Assembly: GCA_002104945.1 (NCBI GenBank)
Contig: MCFH01000008.1
Coordinates: 248,001 to 312,000 of the forward strand
Direction: 5' to 3'
DNA length: 64,000 nucleotides
Origin: Piromyces finnis finn
Lineage: Eukaryota > Fungi > Neocallimastigomycota
Shown here: one piece after another, positions 20,304 through 43,275 of the stretch
Position numbering within the stretch: position 1 is the stretch's first letter
Layout of the letters: every line of letters starts with the position of its first letter
Made by a program: the position numbers and the translations under genes
Notes under the pieces: generated by a model
Database searches by the model: none
The model's input: the letters and a program-made list of their open reading frames with translations, nothing else
Told to the model about the DNA's origin: nothing

Positions 20304-23300
20304 ATGTCAGCTACAGAAAATACAGTTGATATAACGGATGTACCAGCGTCTAATGATAAAACTATAGATCCTAAAATAGAGGATAATGAGGCTAAACCTG
20401 TATCCTATTTAGGTCTTTTTAAATATTCAACAACTCTTGAAAAATTCATGGTAATTTTCGGTCTTATTGGTGCAATAGCCCAAGGTCTTACCATGCCAAT
20501 TATGATTGAAGTTATGAGTGATTTAATTAACATATTCATGAATCTTGTAGCTTCTGTAACCATTAGAAATTTAATTGGTATTCAAGATAATGATGACCTT
20601 ATTGTCGAATTTTTAAATAAAGCCACTGGTGGCGACCAACAAGCATTAGGTTCATTTTTAGCTCAACATCCAGAAATTGATATAAATAAATTACAAAATG
20701 CCTCCCAAAGTTTCGATGCTTCTGCTTACGGTGAAGCCTTCAATGTTGCTTCTTTATTTATGCCAAGTCATGATTTTTGGCATCAATTCCGTAAATATAT
20801 GTTATATTTAGTCATTGTAGCTATTGTTTCTTTTGTTGGTTCATTCCTTATGGATGCTTTCCTCACAGTATCATCTATGCGTCAAGTTACCACTATAAGA
20901 TCATTAACATTTAAATCTATTATAAAGCAAGAAATTCCATGGCATGAAAAAACAAGTCCAGGTGAATTAGCTTCTCGTATTATTAGCGATACTATTTTAA
21001 TTGAAGAAGGTATAGGATTTAAACTTGGTATGGTTGTACAAAGTGTAGTTACATTCATTGCATGTTTCGTATTGGCTTATAAGGCAGGTTGGAAATTATC
21101 ATTGGCAATGTCAGTAATTATACCTATAATTCTCATATTAGTTGTTGGTATGGCTGTTGTATTAAGAAAGTATACTAAAAAAACTCAAGATGCCTACGCA
21201 GAATTAGGTGGTATTGCTCAAGAAGCCTTCTCTCAAATTAGAACTATTGTTTCTTTCGGTACTGAACAAAAAGAAATTGATCGTTATGTTAGCAAATTGA
21301 AACCAACCAAGAAGTATGGTATTATTAAAGGTAATGCATTTGGAATTACCCTTGGTCTAGTATTTGGTGTTGTTTTCTCTTCTTACTCCATTGCTTTTAT
21401 TTATGGTACACACCTTATTCAAGATGGTGAAATGCAATATGGTGATGTTCTTAGTGTATTTATGGGTATTATGATGGGTGCAATGACTTTTTCTGGTGTA
21501 GGTGCAATGTTAAGTTCTTTCAGTGAAGCCACTGGTGCTGCTGCAAAACTTTTCGATATTATTGAACGTGAACCAAAAATTAAATTAGAAGGTGGTTTAA
21601 TTCCAGATAAACCAACAGAAGGTCATATTGAATTCCAGGATGTTCGTTTCAACTATCCTTCTCGTCCAGACGTAGAAGTATTAAAAGGTATTTCTTTCAA
21701 ATGTTTACCTGGTCAAACTGTAGCCTTAGTAGGTGCTTCTGGTTCCGGTAAATCAACAGCTGTCCAATTATTAGAAAGATTCTACAACAAAAAGAGCGGT
21801 AGAATTTTAATTGATGGAAAGGATATCGAAGAATATAATGTTCAATGGATTCGTTCACAAATCGGTTTGGTATCGCAAGAACCTACTTTATTCGATAATT
21901 CTGTTGCTAAAAATATTGCTATTAATAGTCCAAATGCTACTCAAGAACAAATTGAAGAAGCTGCTAAATTAGCAAATGCTCACGAATTCATTCAAAAATT
22001 ATCAAATGGATATGAAACTAGTACTGGTGAAAGAGGTTTACAAATGAGTGGTGGTCAAAAACAACGTATTTGTATTGCTCGTGCTTTAATTAATAATCCA
22101 AAGATTTTATTATTGGATGAAGCTACCTCTGCATTAGATAATAAATCGGAAAAGGTTGTTCAAGCCGCTTTAGATTCTGCCGCTTCAGGTAGAACTACAT
22201 TAGTTATTGCTCATCGTTTATCAACAATTAAAAACGCTGATTTAATTATTGTTATGGAAAAGGGTATTATTATTGAATCCGGTACACACGATGAATTAAT
22301 GAAAATGAAAAAGTATTACTATAACTTAGTTAAAAATCAAGAAATTAAAATTAAGGAAGATGAAAAAGATCCAGATTCTGAAGCTGAGGATGGTGATCCA
22401 GATGCCATTCAACAAACTCAATTTGTTGAACCAGTCACTACTACCCGTCGTGAAACCACTGTTTTAAGTCGTATTGCCTCTTCTATTTCAATGTCTCGTC
22501 GTCAAACTACCGGTGGATTAAGTGAAAAGAGTACACATGAAGCATCTGGCAAATCTTATGGATTAAGCGATATGGAATGGAAAAGATACTTTAATATGAA
22601 TAAACCATATTGGTTAACTAATTTACTCGGATTTATTGGTGCTTTATTTAATGGTGCTATTCAACCAGCCTTTGCCTTTATTTTCTCAGAAGCTCTTAAT
22701 ACTTTCACTAAACAAGGTGATGATTTAATTGATGGTGGAAAATTCTGGGGTATTATGTTCATTGTTTTAGGTGTTTGTAATTTCTTCTCTTTCTACTTTA
22801 ATATGGGTGGTTTCTTCATTGCTGGTGAACAACTTTCCTACGATTTACGTAAAAGTATGTACAACAATATGATTCGTCAAGAAGTTGGATTCTTTGATAC
22901 CAATGATATTGGTGATGGTACAGAAAAGGCAGGTGGTCAAGGACGTGGTGCAACAACCACTAGTACAGGTACATTAACCGCTAAATTAGCTACTGAAGCA
23001 GGTCTTGTTAATGGTTTAAACACAAATATTGGACAAGTATTCCAACAAATTGTCACTGTTGTTGGTGGTTTTGGTATTGCCTTCTATAATGGATGGAAAT
23101 TAACTTTAATTCTTTTAATTGCTGTTCCATTCCTTTTCATTGGTTCATTCATTAGAGGAAAAGCTATCAGAAACAAAAATAAGGAAAACAGAGCTATTTT
23201 TGAAAACAGTGCTAAAGTTGCCACTGAAGCCATCATTAGTGTTAAAACGGTTTACTCATTAAATCTTTCAGATTACTTTATCAATTTATATGATGAAAAA

Positions 23301-40900: not shown

Positions 40901-43275
40901 TATTATTGTTAGATGAAGCTACCTCTGCCTTGGACAATCAATCCGAAAAGATTGTTCAATCAGCATTAGAATCTGCAGCTTCAGGTAGAACTACATTAGT
41001 TATTGCTCACCGTCTCTCCACCGTAAAAAACGCTGATTTAATTATTGTTCTAGAAAAAGGTTCAATTATTGAATCTGGTACACACGATGAATTAATGGCT
41101 CTAAAGCAATACTATTATAATTTAGTTAAAAATCAAGAAATTAAAGTTGAAGAAGAAAAAATTAAAGATGAAATTGAGATGGAAAACGAAAATGAAAACG
41201 AAAACGAATATAGTACCACCGATATTAACAAGAGTCAAGAAAGTAATTTGAATGAAATTGATAGGAATCAAAATATTTCATCACGAAGTCAATCAAAATC
41301 CCTATCCCAAAATCTAAATAGTTATGACGACTATACCATGGAGAATCCTATTGTAGGTAGAATTTCATCCAACCTAACCCTTTCATTGAACAGTCTCTCA
41401 AATGGAACCAAAAATCAATATATTATTGAAGAACGTCGAGAAAAATCTTATGGTTTTAAAGATATGCCATGGAAAAAATATATCAATATCAATAAACCCT
41501 ATTGGTTACCCAATATTTTAGGATTTTTTGGATCCGCTTGTAATGGCGCTATTCAACCAGCATTTGCATTTATTTTTTCATCTGCACTGAATACATTTAC
41601 CAAACATGGTGATGATCTAATTAAGGGAGGAGAATTTTGGGGATTAATGTTTATTCTTTTAGGGGTGTGTAATTTCATCTTCTTCTATTGTAATCTTGGA
41701 GGATTTTTCATTGCTGGAGAGCATTTATCCTATGAACTTCGACGTCGTATGTATAACTCCATGATTCGACAAGAAGTCGGATTTTTCGATACAAATGATA
41801 TTGGAGATGGTTCAGAAAAATCATCGGGTCCCAATAATAATACCGCAAGTACTGGTACCTTAACCGCAAAATTAGCCACTGAAGCAAGTTTAGTTATTGG
41901 ATTAAATTTAAACATTGGAACCATTTTCCAACAATTAGTAACCGTAATTGGTGGATTTTGTATTGCCTTTATCTATGGTTGGAAGTTAACGTTGATTTTA
42001 TTGATCTTGGTTCCATTCCTTTTTATAGGTTCCTATGTACGTATGCAATCCATTAAAAATCGTAGTCAAGAAAATCGTAATGTCTTTGAAAGTAGTTCCA
42101 AAGTAGCCTGTGAAGCAATTATTAGTATTAAGACAGTAGCTGCTTTAAATTTAGAAGATTACTTTGAAAACTTGTATTATCAAAAGTTGGATGAACCCAC
42201 TAAACGTCTTGAACGTCGTGCCTATATTAGTGCTATTGGTACTGGTTTTAGTAATGCCATAGCTTTTTTTGCCTATATGGTAGGTTATTGGATTGGTGCT
42301 GTATTTATTGAAAAGGGATATATGGAATTTAATAACATGTTCAAAGTAGTTATGGCTATTATTTTAACTGCCATGGCGGTAGGACAAAGTAGTAGCATTG
42401 CACCAGAAGCCAATAAAGCGATTGAAGCCTTCATACACATTTTAGAAATTATAGAGAGAAAATCAAGAATTAATGCTGAAGACGAACATGGTATTAAAAA
42501 AGAAGAAGACGGATTAAACGGAGACCTTGAATTTAAAAATATATTCTTTAGCTATCCGTCTCGTCCAAATGTTACCGTATTACAAATGGGTGATAAACAA
42601 ATTAAAATTCCAACAGGTAAAATGTGTGCCTTTGTAGGGGGTTCTGGATGTGGAAAAAGTACAATTATTGGTTTACTTCCACGTTGGTATGATGTTACCG
42701 AAGGATCAGTTAAGGTGGATGATGTTGAAAATAAAGAATATAACATTAAATGGCTTCGTCAACAAATTGGTATTGTTAATCAGGAACCATGTCTTTTCAA
42801 CATTTCTATTAAGGAAAATATTAAATATGGTAAATTGGATGCTACCGATGAAGAAATTTATGAAGCTTGTAAAAAGGCAAACATTCATGACTTTATTATG
42901 TCTCTTCCAGAAAAGTATGATACCTTAGTTGGTGGTCTTGGTACTTCACAAATGAGTGGTGGTCAAAAGCAACGTATTGCTATTGCTCGTGCTATGATTC
43001 GTAATCCAAAGATTTTATTATTAGATGAAGCTACCTCTGCTTTAGATGCCGAATCCGAATTAATTGTACAAAAAGCGTTAGAAGAAGCATCTGAAGGTCG
43101 CACCACCATTACCATTGCTCATCGTCTATCTACCATTAAAGATGCTGCACAAATTTGCGTATTTAAGGATGGTCGTATTATTGAAATGGGTAATCATGAA
43201 GATCTTATGAAGCAAAAAGGAGAATATTACAATATGGTGTTAGCAGGTGACGGTGATGTAGAAAAAAAGAAATAA
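37981..43275 (+). CDS. ABCB/MDR1-like paralog 3 (7 exons, Asn-rich N-terminal extension)
   Basis: Exons 37981-38323, 38436-38646, 38781-38862, 39010-39087, 39182-39332, 39595-39822 and 39941-43275 join in frame. Walker A GASGSGKS and GGSGCGKS, signatures LSGGQ and MSGGQ. Confidence 0.9.

Follow-up and report, generated by a model that had tools for sequence, protein, structure and literature searches.

Three tandem ABCB genes and an interposed LINE

The window analysed here, a 64-kb stretch of the Piromyces finnis genome, carries three ABCB genes on the forward strand (P1, P2 and P3), with a full-length LINE (non-LTR retrotransposon) inserted in the same orientation between the first two. P1 (20304–24410) is a full-length ABCB gene with the layout TMD-NBD-TMD-NBD, and its single uninterrupted ORF of 1368 codons bears out the preliminary description of this copy as intronless. 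P2 (32178–36750; 1370 codons) has four exons (32178–32389, 32513–32600, 32756–32926 and 33109–36750) and three introns; the exons total 4113 nt, in frame, and the 1370-aa product equals database model P0003, with identical junctions. P3 (37981–43275; 1475 codons) has seven exons (37981–38323, 38436–38646, 38781–38862, 39010–39087, 39182–39332, 39595–39822 and 39941–43275) and six introns. Its exons total 4428 nt, also in frame, with junctions 3–6 matching database model P0015, and exons 1 and 2 match residues 39–66 and 108–141 of the Anaeromyces robustus ortholog P0013. P0015 is shortened at its N-terminus, which calls for caution in using the existing annotation of P3. Splicing of the P2 and P3 introns draws its support from database models and from cross-species colinearity.

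Pfam searches detected two ABC_membrane (3.8e-107) and two ABC_tran (3.5e-66) domains in P1, and the ORFs formed by the last exons of P2 and P3 show the same full-transporter layout of two plus two. Each of the two NBDs contains the Walker A, signature and Walker B motifs. The closest named relatives are from Neocallimastigomycota (73–86% identity), followed by ABCB1/MDR1 proteins of other fungi and animals (36–44%). In domain order, NBD motifs and this level of identity the genes resemble eukaryotic ABCB (P-glycoprotein/MDR1) transporters, but here they belong to a lineage-specific expansion of anaerobic gut fungi; the P. finnis genome contains at least nine full-length ABCB paralogs. P1 and P2 both evolve under purifying selection, dN/dS between them being 0.21 in the blocks free of gene conversion (see below).

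The LINE (24864–30617) contains an ORF of 1512 aa (25802–30340) with an RVT_1 domain (9.1e-36) and, in its N-terminal part, an Exo_endo_phos domain (6.1e-07). A poly(A) tract of 32 nt (30586–30617) and a candidate 9-nt target-site duplication (24855–24863 and 30618–30626) were read directly from the sequence, although the duplication and the 5′ boundary lie in AT-rich DNA and are of low confidence. Endonuclease and reverse transcriptase (RT) in one long ORF, a poly(A) tract and many genomic copies place the element among APE-type LINEs. Across 56 Mb its family, which includes intact ORFs of ~1512 aa, comprises ~1,075 candidate loci, or about one per 52 kb, and the 91 scored loci are 98–100% identical in the RT region. 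The local LINE family had been put forward as a candidate RT source; with so many candidate loci, a copy next to P1 and P2 is expected by chance, and its adjacency is uninformative. The copies are far younger than the P1/P2 split (dS ~1), so that the introns need not have been lost through the action of the family present today.

The genes surrounding the array had been described as intron-rich, which holds only in part: 48025–50133 (702 aa, zf-C2H2) and 52791–55670 (959 aa) are each a single long ORF.

Shared intron positions and the direction of change

All nine introns of P2 and P3 have GT...AG ends and a GC content of 5–16%, as against 33% in exons. Intron 1 of P2 (32390–32512; 123 nt, GTAAAG...AG, GC 0.15) interrupts in phase 2 the Met codon corresponding to P1 residue 67, a codon and phase shared with P3 intron 2 (38647–38780; 134 nt, GTATTC...AG) and with introns of the paralogs C166, C157, C215 and C178. 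Intron 2 of P2 (32601–32755; 155 nt, phase 0, GTACTA...AG, GC 0.12) follows P1 residue 96, at the site of P3 intron 3 (38863–39009; 147 nt, phase 0) and of a C178 intron; at this 96/97 junction P3 is shorter by two residues. Intron 3 of P2 (32927–33108; 182 nt, phase 0, GTAATT...AG, GC 0.05) follows P1 residue 154 and shares this 154/155 site with P3 intron 4 (39088–39181; 94 nt, phase 0) and again with a C178 intron. The P2 introns thus coincide in codon and phase with P3 introns 2–4, as had been claimed from the sequence alone.

Two further introns of P3 are missing from both P1 and P2: intron 5 (39333–39594; 262 nt, phase 1), in the Ser codon corresponding to P1 residue 205, and intron 6 (39823–39940; 118 nt, phase 1), in the codon of P1 residue 281. 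C178 matches both in codon and phase. The remaining one, P3 intron 1 (38324–38435; 112 nt, phase 1, GTTAAT...AG), lies in an N-terminal extension of the P3 lineage; both flanking exons are conserved in P0013, and since the extension has no counterpart in P1 or P2, this intron cannot be scored as lost there. Accordingly, the 0/3/6 gradient of the preliminary description is correct as a count, but the copies are comparable at five sites, giving a 5/3/0 series to which P3 adds one intron of its own.

At all five common sites P1 is colinear with the spliced products of P2 and P3, and at codons 205 and 281 neither P1 nor P2 shows an indel relative to spliced P3, in line with the earlier comparison of these five positions. 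The introns are also strongly displaced towards the 5′ end. All six of P3 lie no further than 1960 nt into the gene, in the first 24.7% of the CDS, and those surviving in P2 are confined to the first 11.5%; under uniform placement such distributions have probabilities of 0.247^6 (~2e-4) and 0.115^3 (~1.5e-3), respectively. The last exons measure 3642 nt in P2 and 3335 nt in P3. Both the clustering of the P3 introns within ~2 kb and the intron-free 3′ portion of ~3.3–3.6 kb had been described correctly.

The direction of change can be judged from C178 (model P0037), a distant paralog on another contig that is ~57% identical. C178 has introns matching those at codons 67 (phase 2), 96 (phase 0), 154 (phase 0), 205 (phase 1) and 281 (phase 1), together with two extra ones near codon 265 (phase 1) and at 610/611 (phase 2). 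It branches outside the P1–P3 clade in both trees (support 100 and 99/97), with the root within the ABCB family being uncertain. Because each of the five comparable sites has an intron in this outgroup paralog, in the same codon and phase, the direction of intron change is loss, not gain.

The opposite polarity, considered from the outset, would have a formerly intronless family (acquired horizontally, for instance) in which P2, P3 and C178 gained 5′ introns. P1 is intronless, as is the deep-branching paralog C173 (a single ORF of 1481 aa), and the uncertain root leaves some room for such a history. To account for five sites with common codon and phase in genes as diverged as P3 and C178, however, it would need either one ancestor already rich in introns or insertion in parallel at all five. 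A search for high-identity copies of P3 intron 5 across the genome found none, which indicates that this intron is not an introner-like element and deprives gain of such a source. The family, moreover, groups with eukaryotic ABCB1/MDR1 proteins (36–44%) and is not bacterial-like. We therefore regard gain as extremely improbable.

Elsewhere in the family, four paralogs (C166, C157/C162 and C215) have no intron left other than the phase-2 one at codon 67, which is kept in six of the nine paralogs. Intron presence is thus nested from the 5′ end across the family, with ~7, 5 (+1), 3, 1 and 0 introns.

For other taxa, the evidence on introns consists of ORF starts and shortened gene models. ORF starts of homologs cluster just 3′ of sites 67, 154, 205 and 281, and in homologs of the P3 type from other samples the ORFs begin at the first Met past the codon-281 site. 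The P3 clade and the P1/P2 clade each include members from Anaeromyces, Neocallimastix and Piromyces sp. E2. In other P1/P2-clade members, from other taxa, ORFs run from residue 166 across the 205 and 281 sites, indirectly suggesting that introns 5 and 6 are missing there as well. As these ORFs span both sites, the loss of the two introns probably predates the P1/P2 duplication.

Gene conversion among the copies

The three genes have also exchanged sequence. A tract of ~973 nt in P1 (21577–22549; partner 33920–34892 in P2) contains only three differences, with identical runs of 182, 337 and 401 nt. Overall, P1 and P2 share identical runs of 401, 337, 199 and 182 nt, whereas the longest run expected by chance was 136 nt when the 336 P1/P2 differences were placed at random (2000 permutations). 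Consistently, dS between the two genes is 0.018 within the tract and 1.07 in unconverted blocks. A second tract is common to all three copies (P1 23820–24190, P2 36163–36533, P3 42706–43076), with identical runs of 77, 209 and 83 nt between P1 and P3 and of 209, 66 and 83 nt between P2 and P3, and a third-position identity of 0.93–1.00. Judging from these sequences, gene conversion between the copies is real and recent. Near-identical tracts in an old background (dS ~1), one of them common to all three copies, are typical of ectopic conversion (concerted evolution) in tandem families. What differs here is that every tract is confined to the part downstream of the final intron in the partner that has introns, and that the 5′ region in which the introns differ is the most diverged part.

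Conversion among the copies had been proposed as a means by which intron absence might have spread. The exchange itself is borne out, but it shows no sign of having spread intron absence: the tracts stop ~43 codons 3′ of the last intron of P2, and conversion is unnecessary for explaining any intron difference. The specific possibility that an intronless donor, P1 or an ancestor, overwrote introns 5 and 6 of P2 draws on the frequency and recency of P1/P2 conversion and on the position of the codon-205 site inside a low-divergence P1/P2 tract (codons 198–236). The codon-281 site, however, lies in a strongly diverged P1/P2 block (60-nt windows 0.62–0.73 identical), the three 5′ introns of P2 were left in place, and the ORFs of other taxa spanning both sites point to a loss before the duplication. 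Such overwriting is thus very improbable.

A broader reading would join the 3′-polar homogenisation and the 3′-polar erasure of introns into one process, a 'retro-conversion' in which partial cDNAs made by a hyperactive LINE RT recombine with both their source gene and its tandem neighbours. This would account for the confinement of every tract to sequence downstream of the final intron in the partner with introns. The data equally allow ordinary DNA–DNA conversion blocked by intron heterology and 5′ divergence, and do not separate the two; we regard the joint process as unlikely. If true, RT-mediated intron loss would be a live process in this array and could be observed there as polymorphism.

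Stepwise intron loss and its probable mechanism

Taken as a whole, the sequences make it probable that P1, P2 and P3 are functional multidrug-type ABCB exporter genes arranged in tandem, and that the array derives from an intron-bearing ancestor through stepwise loss from the 3′ end, most likely via cDNA recombination. In this history, introns stood at no fewer than five places in the ancestor shared with C178 (P1 codons 67, 96/97, 154/155, 205 and 281), and P3 still has them all, alongside one found in its own lineage. The two 3′-most introns (205 and 281) were dropped in the ancestor common to P1 and P2, leaving the three-intron state seen in P2, and P1 later shed the remaining three adjacent introns cleanly. 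The P1 lineage thus passed from a P3-like through a P2-like state to an intronless one, with two intermediate stages kept in the array, much as the preliminary description had proposed. The most likely mechanism would be homologous recombination of the gene with a partial or complete cDNA of its own spliced mRNA, the RT being supplied by the very abundant LINE family of the genome and not specifically by the copy between P1 and P2. Separately, ordinary ectopic gene conversion would keep homogenising the intron-free 3′ parts of all three copies.

A cDNA intermediate is not expected to leave a direct sequence trace, and we infer both the intermediate and the RT source from the pattern of loss. 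That pattern, previously called precise, 3′-biased and concerted, proves to be so, with the polarity now backed by C178: the deletions are exact, the survivors lie at the 5′ end, and introns were lost in adjacent blocks, 205 and 281 as one unit and 67, 96 and 154 as another. Exact, adjacent and 3′-biased loss is what the RT model predicts (PMC3652778), and the losses fit that model because they are precise, 3′-biased and involve adjacent introns lost together. The proposal of RT-mediated loss is therefore upheld as to pattern, and as to mechanism it is an interpretation of that pattern. The polarity is imperfect, in that the C178 intron near codon 265 is missing from P3, which nonetheless retains that at 281; the C178 introns at 265 and 610 may be gains specific to C178.

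Introns could also have been removed precisely without RT, each singly, through genomic deletions or the repair of double-strand breaks at short repeats, while useful 5′ introns were retained, for example for expression. The 5′ bias of survivors can also be explained by selection for promoter-proximal introns. Retention of the codon-67 intron in six of nine paralogs is as expected under such selection, and the absence of the ~265 intron from P3, which still has that at 281, resembles a single internal loss. NHEJ-type repair has been proposed for precise intron loss (PMC3652778). Nevertheless, deletion models more often yield inexact loss (PMC3652778), whereas all five comparable losses are nucleotide-exact, without indel, and came in adjacent blocks, 205 with 281 and then 67 with 96 and 154. 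We consider deletion without RT fairly unlikely.

Given that P1 has no intron and that the genome contains an active LINE family, we also considered whether P1 might be a processed retrogene, copied by the LINE machinery from the spliced mRNA of a P2-like parent and landing by chance beside it. Some 50 nt upstream of the P1 ATG resemble the P2 leader, as a retrocopied 5′UTR would, and an 18-nt A run lies ~330 nt past the P1 stop codon. That run is uninformative, however, as the window contains 23 A runs of at least 15 nt, and no poly(A) directly follows a plausible P1 3′UTR. Neither flank homology nor a target-site duplication was found around P1, so that the relics suggested as a check did not materialise. 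Retrocopies insert at unlinked sites, whereas P1 and P2 lie in tandem on one strand, with P1 upstream at a distance of 7.8 kb (~2.0 kb if the LINE is discounted), in a (P1/P2)–P3 order that appears old. The 5′ part of P1, moreover, is the region least like P2 (53–65% aa identity). P1 thus resembles LINE-made processed retrogenes (reviewed in PMC5470649) in being intronless while its genome carries an active LINE, but departs from them in its tandem position, its want of a poly(A) or duplication relic and a 5′ part that is not P2-like, and a retrogene origin is quite improbable.

Stepwise loss through cDNA recombination, the reading we favour, has close parallels in the mRNA-mediated intron loss that has been tested in mammals (PMC3652778), Cryptococcus (PMC2395259) and fission yeasts (PMC3629103), with which the array shares exact deletions, adjacent and 3′-biased loss with 5′ survivors, and an active LINE RT in the genome. 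Unlike in those systems, the stages stand side by side in tandem paralogs instead of being inferred between species, and the copies additionally exchange sequence by gene conversion. The array is a tidy new instance of a known phenomenon and reveals no new mechanism.

Support for the RT model has so far been mostly statistical, drawn from many genes and species. Here one family in one genome presents the whole 5′-nested series (~7, 5, 3, 1 and 0 introns), two intermediates adjoin the intronless end product, and the host LINE family is unusually young and abundant, making the locus a convenient one for testing the RT model in anaerobic fungi.

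Intron positions in the three tandem ABCB genes

Three ABCB transporter genes of the MDR/P-glycoprotein type, here P1, P2 and P3, lie on the forward strand of the window. P1 (20304–24410) consists of one uninterrupted open reading frame (ORF), 1368 codons long, and encodes ABC_membrane and ABC_tran domains, two of each. P2 has exons at 32178–32389, 32513–32600, 32756–32926 and 33109–36750, which sum to 4113 nt and encode 1370 amino acids, with junctions identical to those of its database model, P0003. The exons of P3 (37981–38323, 38436–38646, 38781–38862, 39010–39087, 39182–39332, 39595–39822 and 39941–43275) sum to 4428 nt. 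Its public model, P0015 (1287 amino acids), begins within exon 3 and agrees at junctions 3–6; exons 1 and 2 (37981–38646) match residues 39–66 and 108–141 of P0013, the Anaeromyces robustus ortholog of P3, and once these two exons upstream of the P0015 start are added, the P3 protein reaches ~1475 amino acids. P0003 and P0015 both map to the contig of the window (1.24 Mb). For these reconstructions, exons of P2 and P3 were compared singly, splice sites were chosen by scripts scoring short junction peptides, and P0003, P0015, P0013 and P0037 (the model of the paralog on contig C178) served in place of spliced products. All nine introns of P2 and P3 are of the GT...AG type, 94–262 nt long, with a GC content of 5–16% versus 33% in exons.

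The preliminary description of an intron gradient across the array was correct, as the gene structures and the shared sites confirm. In P1 codon numbering, the first intron of P2 corresponds to intron 2 of P3 (phase 2, in the Met codon equivalent to residue 67), the second to intron 3 (phase 0, after residue 96) and the third to intron 4 (phase 0, after residue 154), so that the junctions bear out the shared codon positions claimed for these three pairs, and the phases agree as well. Introns 5 and 6 of P3 are both of phase 1, at codons 205 and 281. The intronless sequence had been described as colinear without indels at the positions compared, and this holds at all five sites for P1, when set against the spliced products, and at the last two for P2; the match is regular except at the 96/97 junction, where P3 is shorter by two residues. 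The series is nested as first reported, but its count of 6/3/0 needs correction: intron 1 of P3 is within an N-terminal extension that the Anaeromyces ortholog shares and that has no counterpart in P1, P2 or C178, so that the comparable series is 5/3/0. The statement that neighbouring genes are intron-rich was half true, since downstream there are two genes, of 702 and 959 amino acids, each in one unbroken ORF. The only clearly intron-rich neighbour is a minus-strand chain of nine ORFs of 91–331 amino acids (6265–17028), with Chlam_PMP repeat matches in two of the six scanned; the chain probably represents a single large, repeat-rich gene of multiple exons.

Direction of change within the ABCB family

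The same genome encodes at least six further full-length ABCB paralogs beyond the array. Of these, the C178 paralog shares ~57% identity with P1 and is interrupted at codons 67 (phase 2), 96 (phase 0), 154 (phase 0), 205 (phase 1) and 281 (phase 1), which are all five comparable P3 sites, each in equal phase. Two extra introns are found close to codon 265 (phase 1) and at 610/611 (phase 2). A tree of 49 proteins placed C178 and a Neocallimastix relative as sister to the P1/P2/P3 clade, with C166 outside (support 100), and a second tree from blocks free of recent conversion gave C178 the same placement (99/97). In genes so distant, inheritance is the best explanation for five sites that agree in both codon and phase; these introns were therefore already in place in the common ancestor of C178 and the array and disappeared from P2 and P1. 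We regard loss as the near-certain polarity. Intron gain is disfavoured, because the sites are shared between the array and C178 and because introner-like copies of P3 intron 5 were not found: the search for an introner-type origin returned only partial matches of 67–87% identity on both strands, which are typical of AT-rich DNA.

Intron counts are nested from the 5′ end, with about seven in C178, five (plus one) in P3 and three in P2. The paralogs on C166, C157/C162 and C215 have the phase-2 intron at 67 only, while P1 and the deep-branching C173 have none. C173 (G000:C173:284000-293999; L031:3470-7912) is a second intronless ABCB paralog, a single ORF of 1481 amino acids whose long branch arises basally in the family; it either lost all its introns independently or began as an old retrocopy. 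The paralogs on C157 (L029, G000:C157:622000-631782) and C162 (L028, G000:C162:249000-259000) are near-identical, with tree branch lengths of 0 and 0.011, and one lies where its contig ends; the pair reflects either a recent segmental duplication or duplication during assembly.

Gene conversion and the age of the duplicates

P1 and P2 are 90.8% identical across 3639 nt aligned without gaps, and their 336 differences are clumped. Identical runs reach 401, 337, 199 and 182 nt, whereas none exceeded 136 nt when the differences were placed at random 2000 times; background blocks are 60–73% identical. One tract (P1 21577–22549, P2 33920–34892) contains three differences (dS 0.018), and another of ~371 nt is common to all three genes (P1 23820–24190, P2 36163–36533, P3 42706–43076). 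Gene conversion between the copies, as initially proposed, is thus real, as the long identical runs and low dS attest. Its suggested part in spreading intron absence found no support: no intron difference requires conversion, because every tract is confined to the region 3′ of codon 198, ~43 codons beyond the last intron of P2, and the 5′ part, where the intron differences occur, is the most diverged region (53–65% amino-acid identity). That conversion carried intron absence from copy to copy is very improbable, since the codon-281 site itself falls in a diverged P1/P2 block. In blocks untouched by recent conversion, the clade of P2 (32178–36750) and its relatives P0011 and P0009 has a much longer branch (0.21+0.26+0.13) than the P1 type (0.08); the copy that has kept introns is the faster-evolving one, and conversion from P1 is patching it.

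Blocks without recent conversion give a dS of ~1.07 and a dN/dS of 0.21 between P1 and P2, values that indicate old duplicates, both under purifying selection. Orthologs were found in Neocallimastix (P0005 and P0010), Anaeromyces (P0007, P0012 and P0013) and Piromyces sp. E2 (P0011 and P0028). P3-type and P1/P2-type genes are both represented in all three taxa, and A. robustus and Piromyces sp. E2 have one gene of each type on a common contig; the duplication separating P3 from P1/P2, and the tandem layout, are therefore older than these genera. For homologs from other samples, the starts of prokaryote-style ORF calls and truncated gene models were set against the intron sites. Some starts fall at residues 71–74, just past site 67, and others at 207–211, just past site 205. 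Several members of the P1/P2 clade, including one on a 12-kb ENA contig, start at 166, the first Met past intron 154, and P3-type genes and a more basal clade start at 283, the first Met past intron 281. Judging indirectly from these starts, the pattern fits a P2-like ancestor of the P1/P2 clade, in which introns 205 and 281 would have been lost before P1 and P2 split.

A metagenome scan with P1 returned four full-length uninterrupted relatives (L032–L035), which we rejected as intron evidence: they look like transcripts or chimeric assemblies and are uninformative on introns. L032 and L035 begin at the identical base though they come from different samples. In L034, a higher-GC stretch (1–646; GC 0.38), putatively a fragment of a second gene in opposite orientation, lies directly upstream of the ABCB start codon with an A9G5 run between the two; this contig appears to be a chimera assembled from transcripts, not genomic DNA. 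A scan of genome collections with the alignment yielded only bacterial or archaeal half-transporters, among them L042, with 50% GC and a single frame. P0014, a JGI metagenome protein of 1370 amino acids, is P1-like (74–92% identical) to residue 240 and resembles the C178 type thereafter (residues 241–290 are 42% identical to P1); it is probably a chimeric assembly, and trees that include it may be distorted.

Mechanism of loss and the intervening retrotransposon

In the mRNA-mediated model, cDNA made from spliced mRNA would recombine with the gene and erase its introns; exact, adjacent and 3′-biased losses are predicted (PMC3652778), and such loss is also treated in PMC2395259 and PMC3629103. 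The losses in the array match these predictions, being exact, in adjacent blocks and skewed to the 3′ side, and we consider this mechanism the most likely one and, on balance, probable. Precise deletion without reverse transcription, combined with selective retention of 5′ introns, is a rival reading that seems unlikely. That P1 is a processed retrogene is likewise disfavoured, for it stands in tandem with its relatives, and the proposed check for poly(A) or target-site-duplication relics around it found none; A runs of at least 15 occur 23 times in the window. Comparison of the P1, P2 and P3 flanks, bearing on DNA duplication versus retroposition, gave only low-complexity AT-rich matches, except for a leader of ~50 nt and the first 14 codons common to P1 and P2.

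Between P1 and P2 lies a full-length APE-type LINE (24864–30617) with a 1512-amino-acid ORF carrying Exo_endo_phos and RVT_1 domains, a 32-nt poly(A) and a candidate target-site duplication, a 9-nt direct repeat at 24855–24863 and 30618–30626. A search of the 56-Mb genome with a 467-amino-acid piece across the RT domain found ~1,075 candidate loci; all 91 scored copies are 98–100% identical, and many lie in intact ORFs of ~1512 amino acids, which makes this a burst of unusual size and recency for a fungal genome of 56 Mb. At ~1 copy per 52 kb, one is expected in any 64-kb window, and P1 and P2 diverged long before these copies arose; the suggested link between the local LINE and intron loss should therefore be dropped. 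Taken as a whole, the family is credible as a source of RT, but this copy is a bystander that widened the spacer from ~2.0 to 7.8 kb.

The literature searched on this locus and on the loss of introns in Neocallimastigomycota yielded nothing specific. The array adds a new, well-documented case of a process already known.
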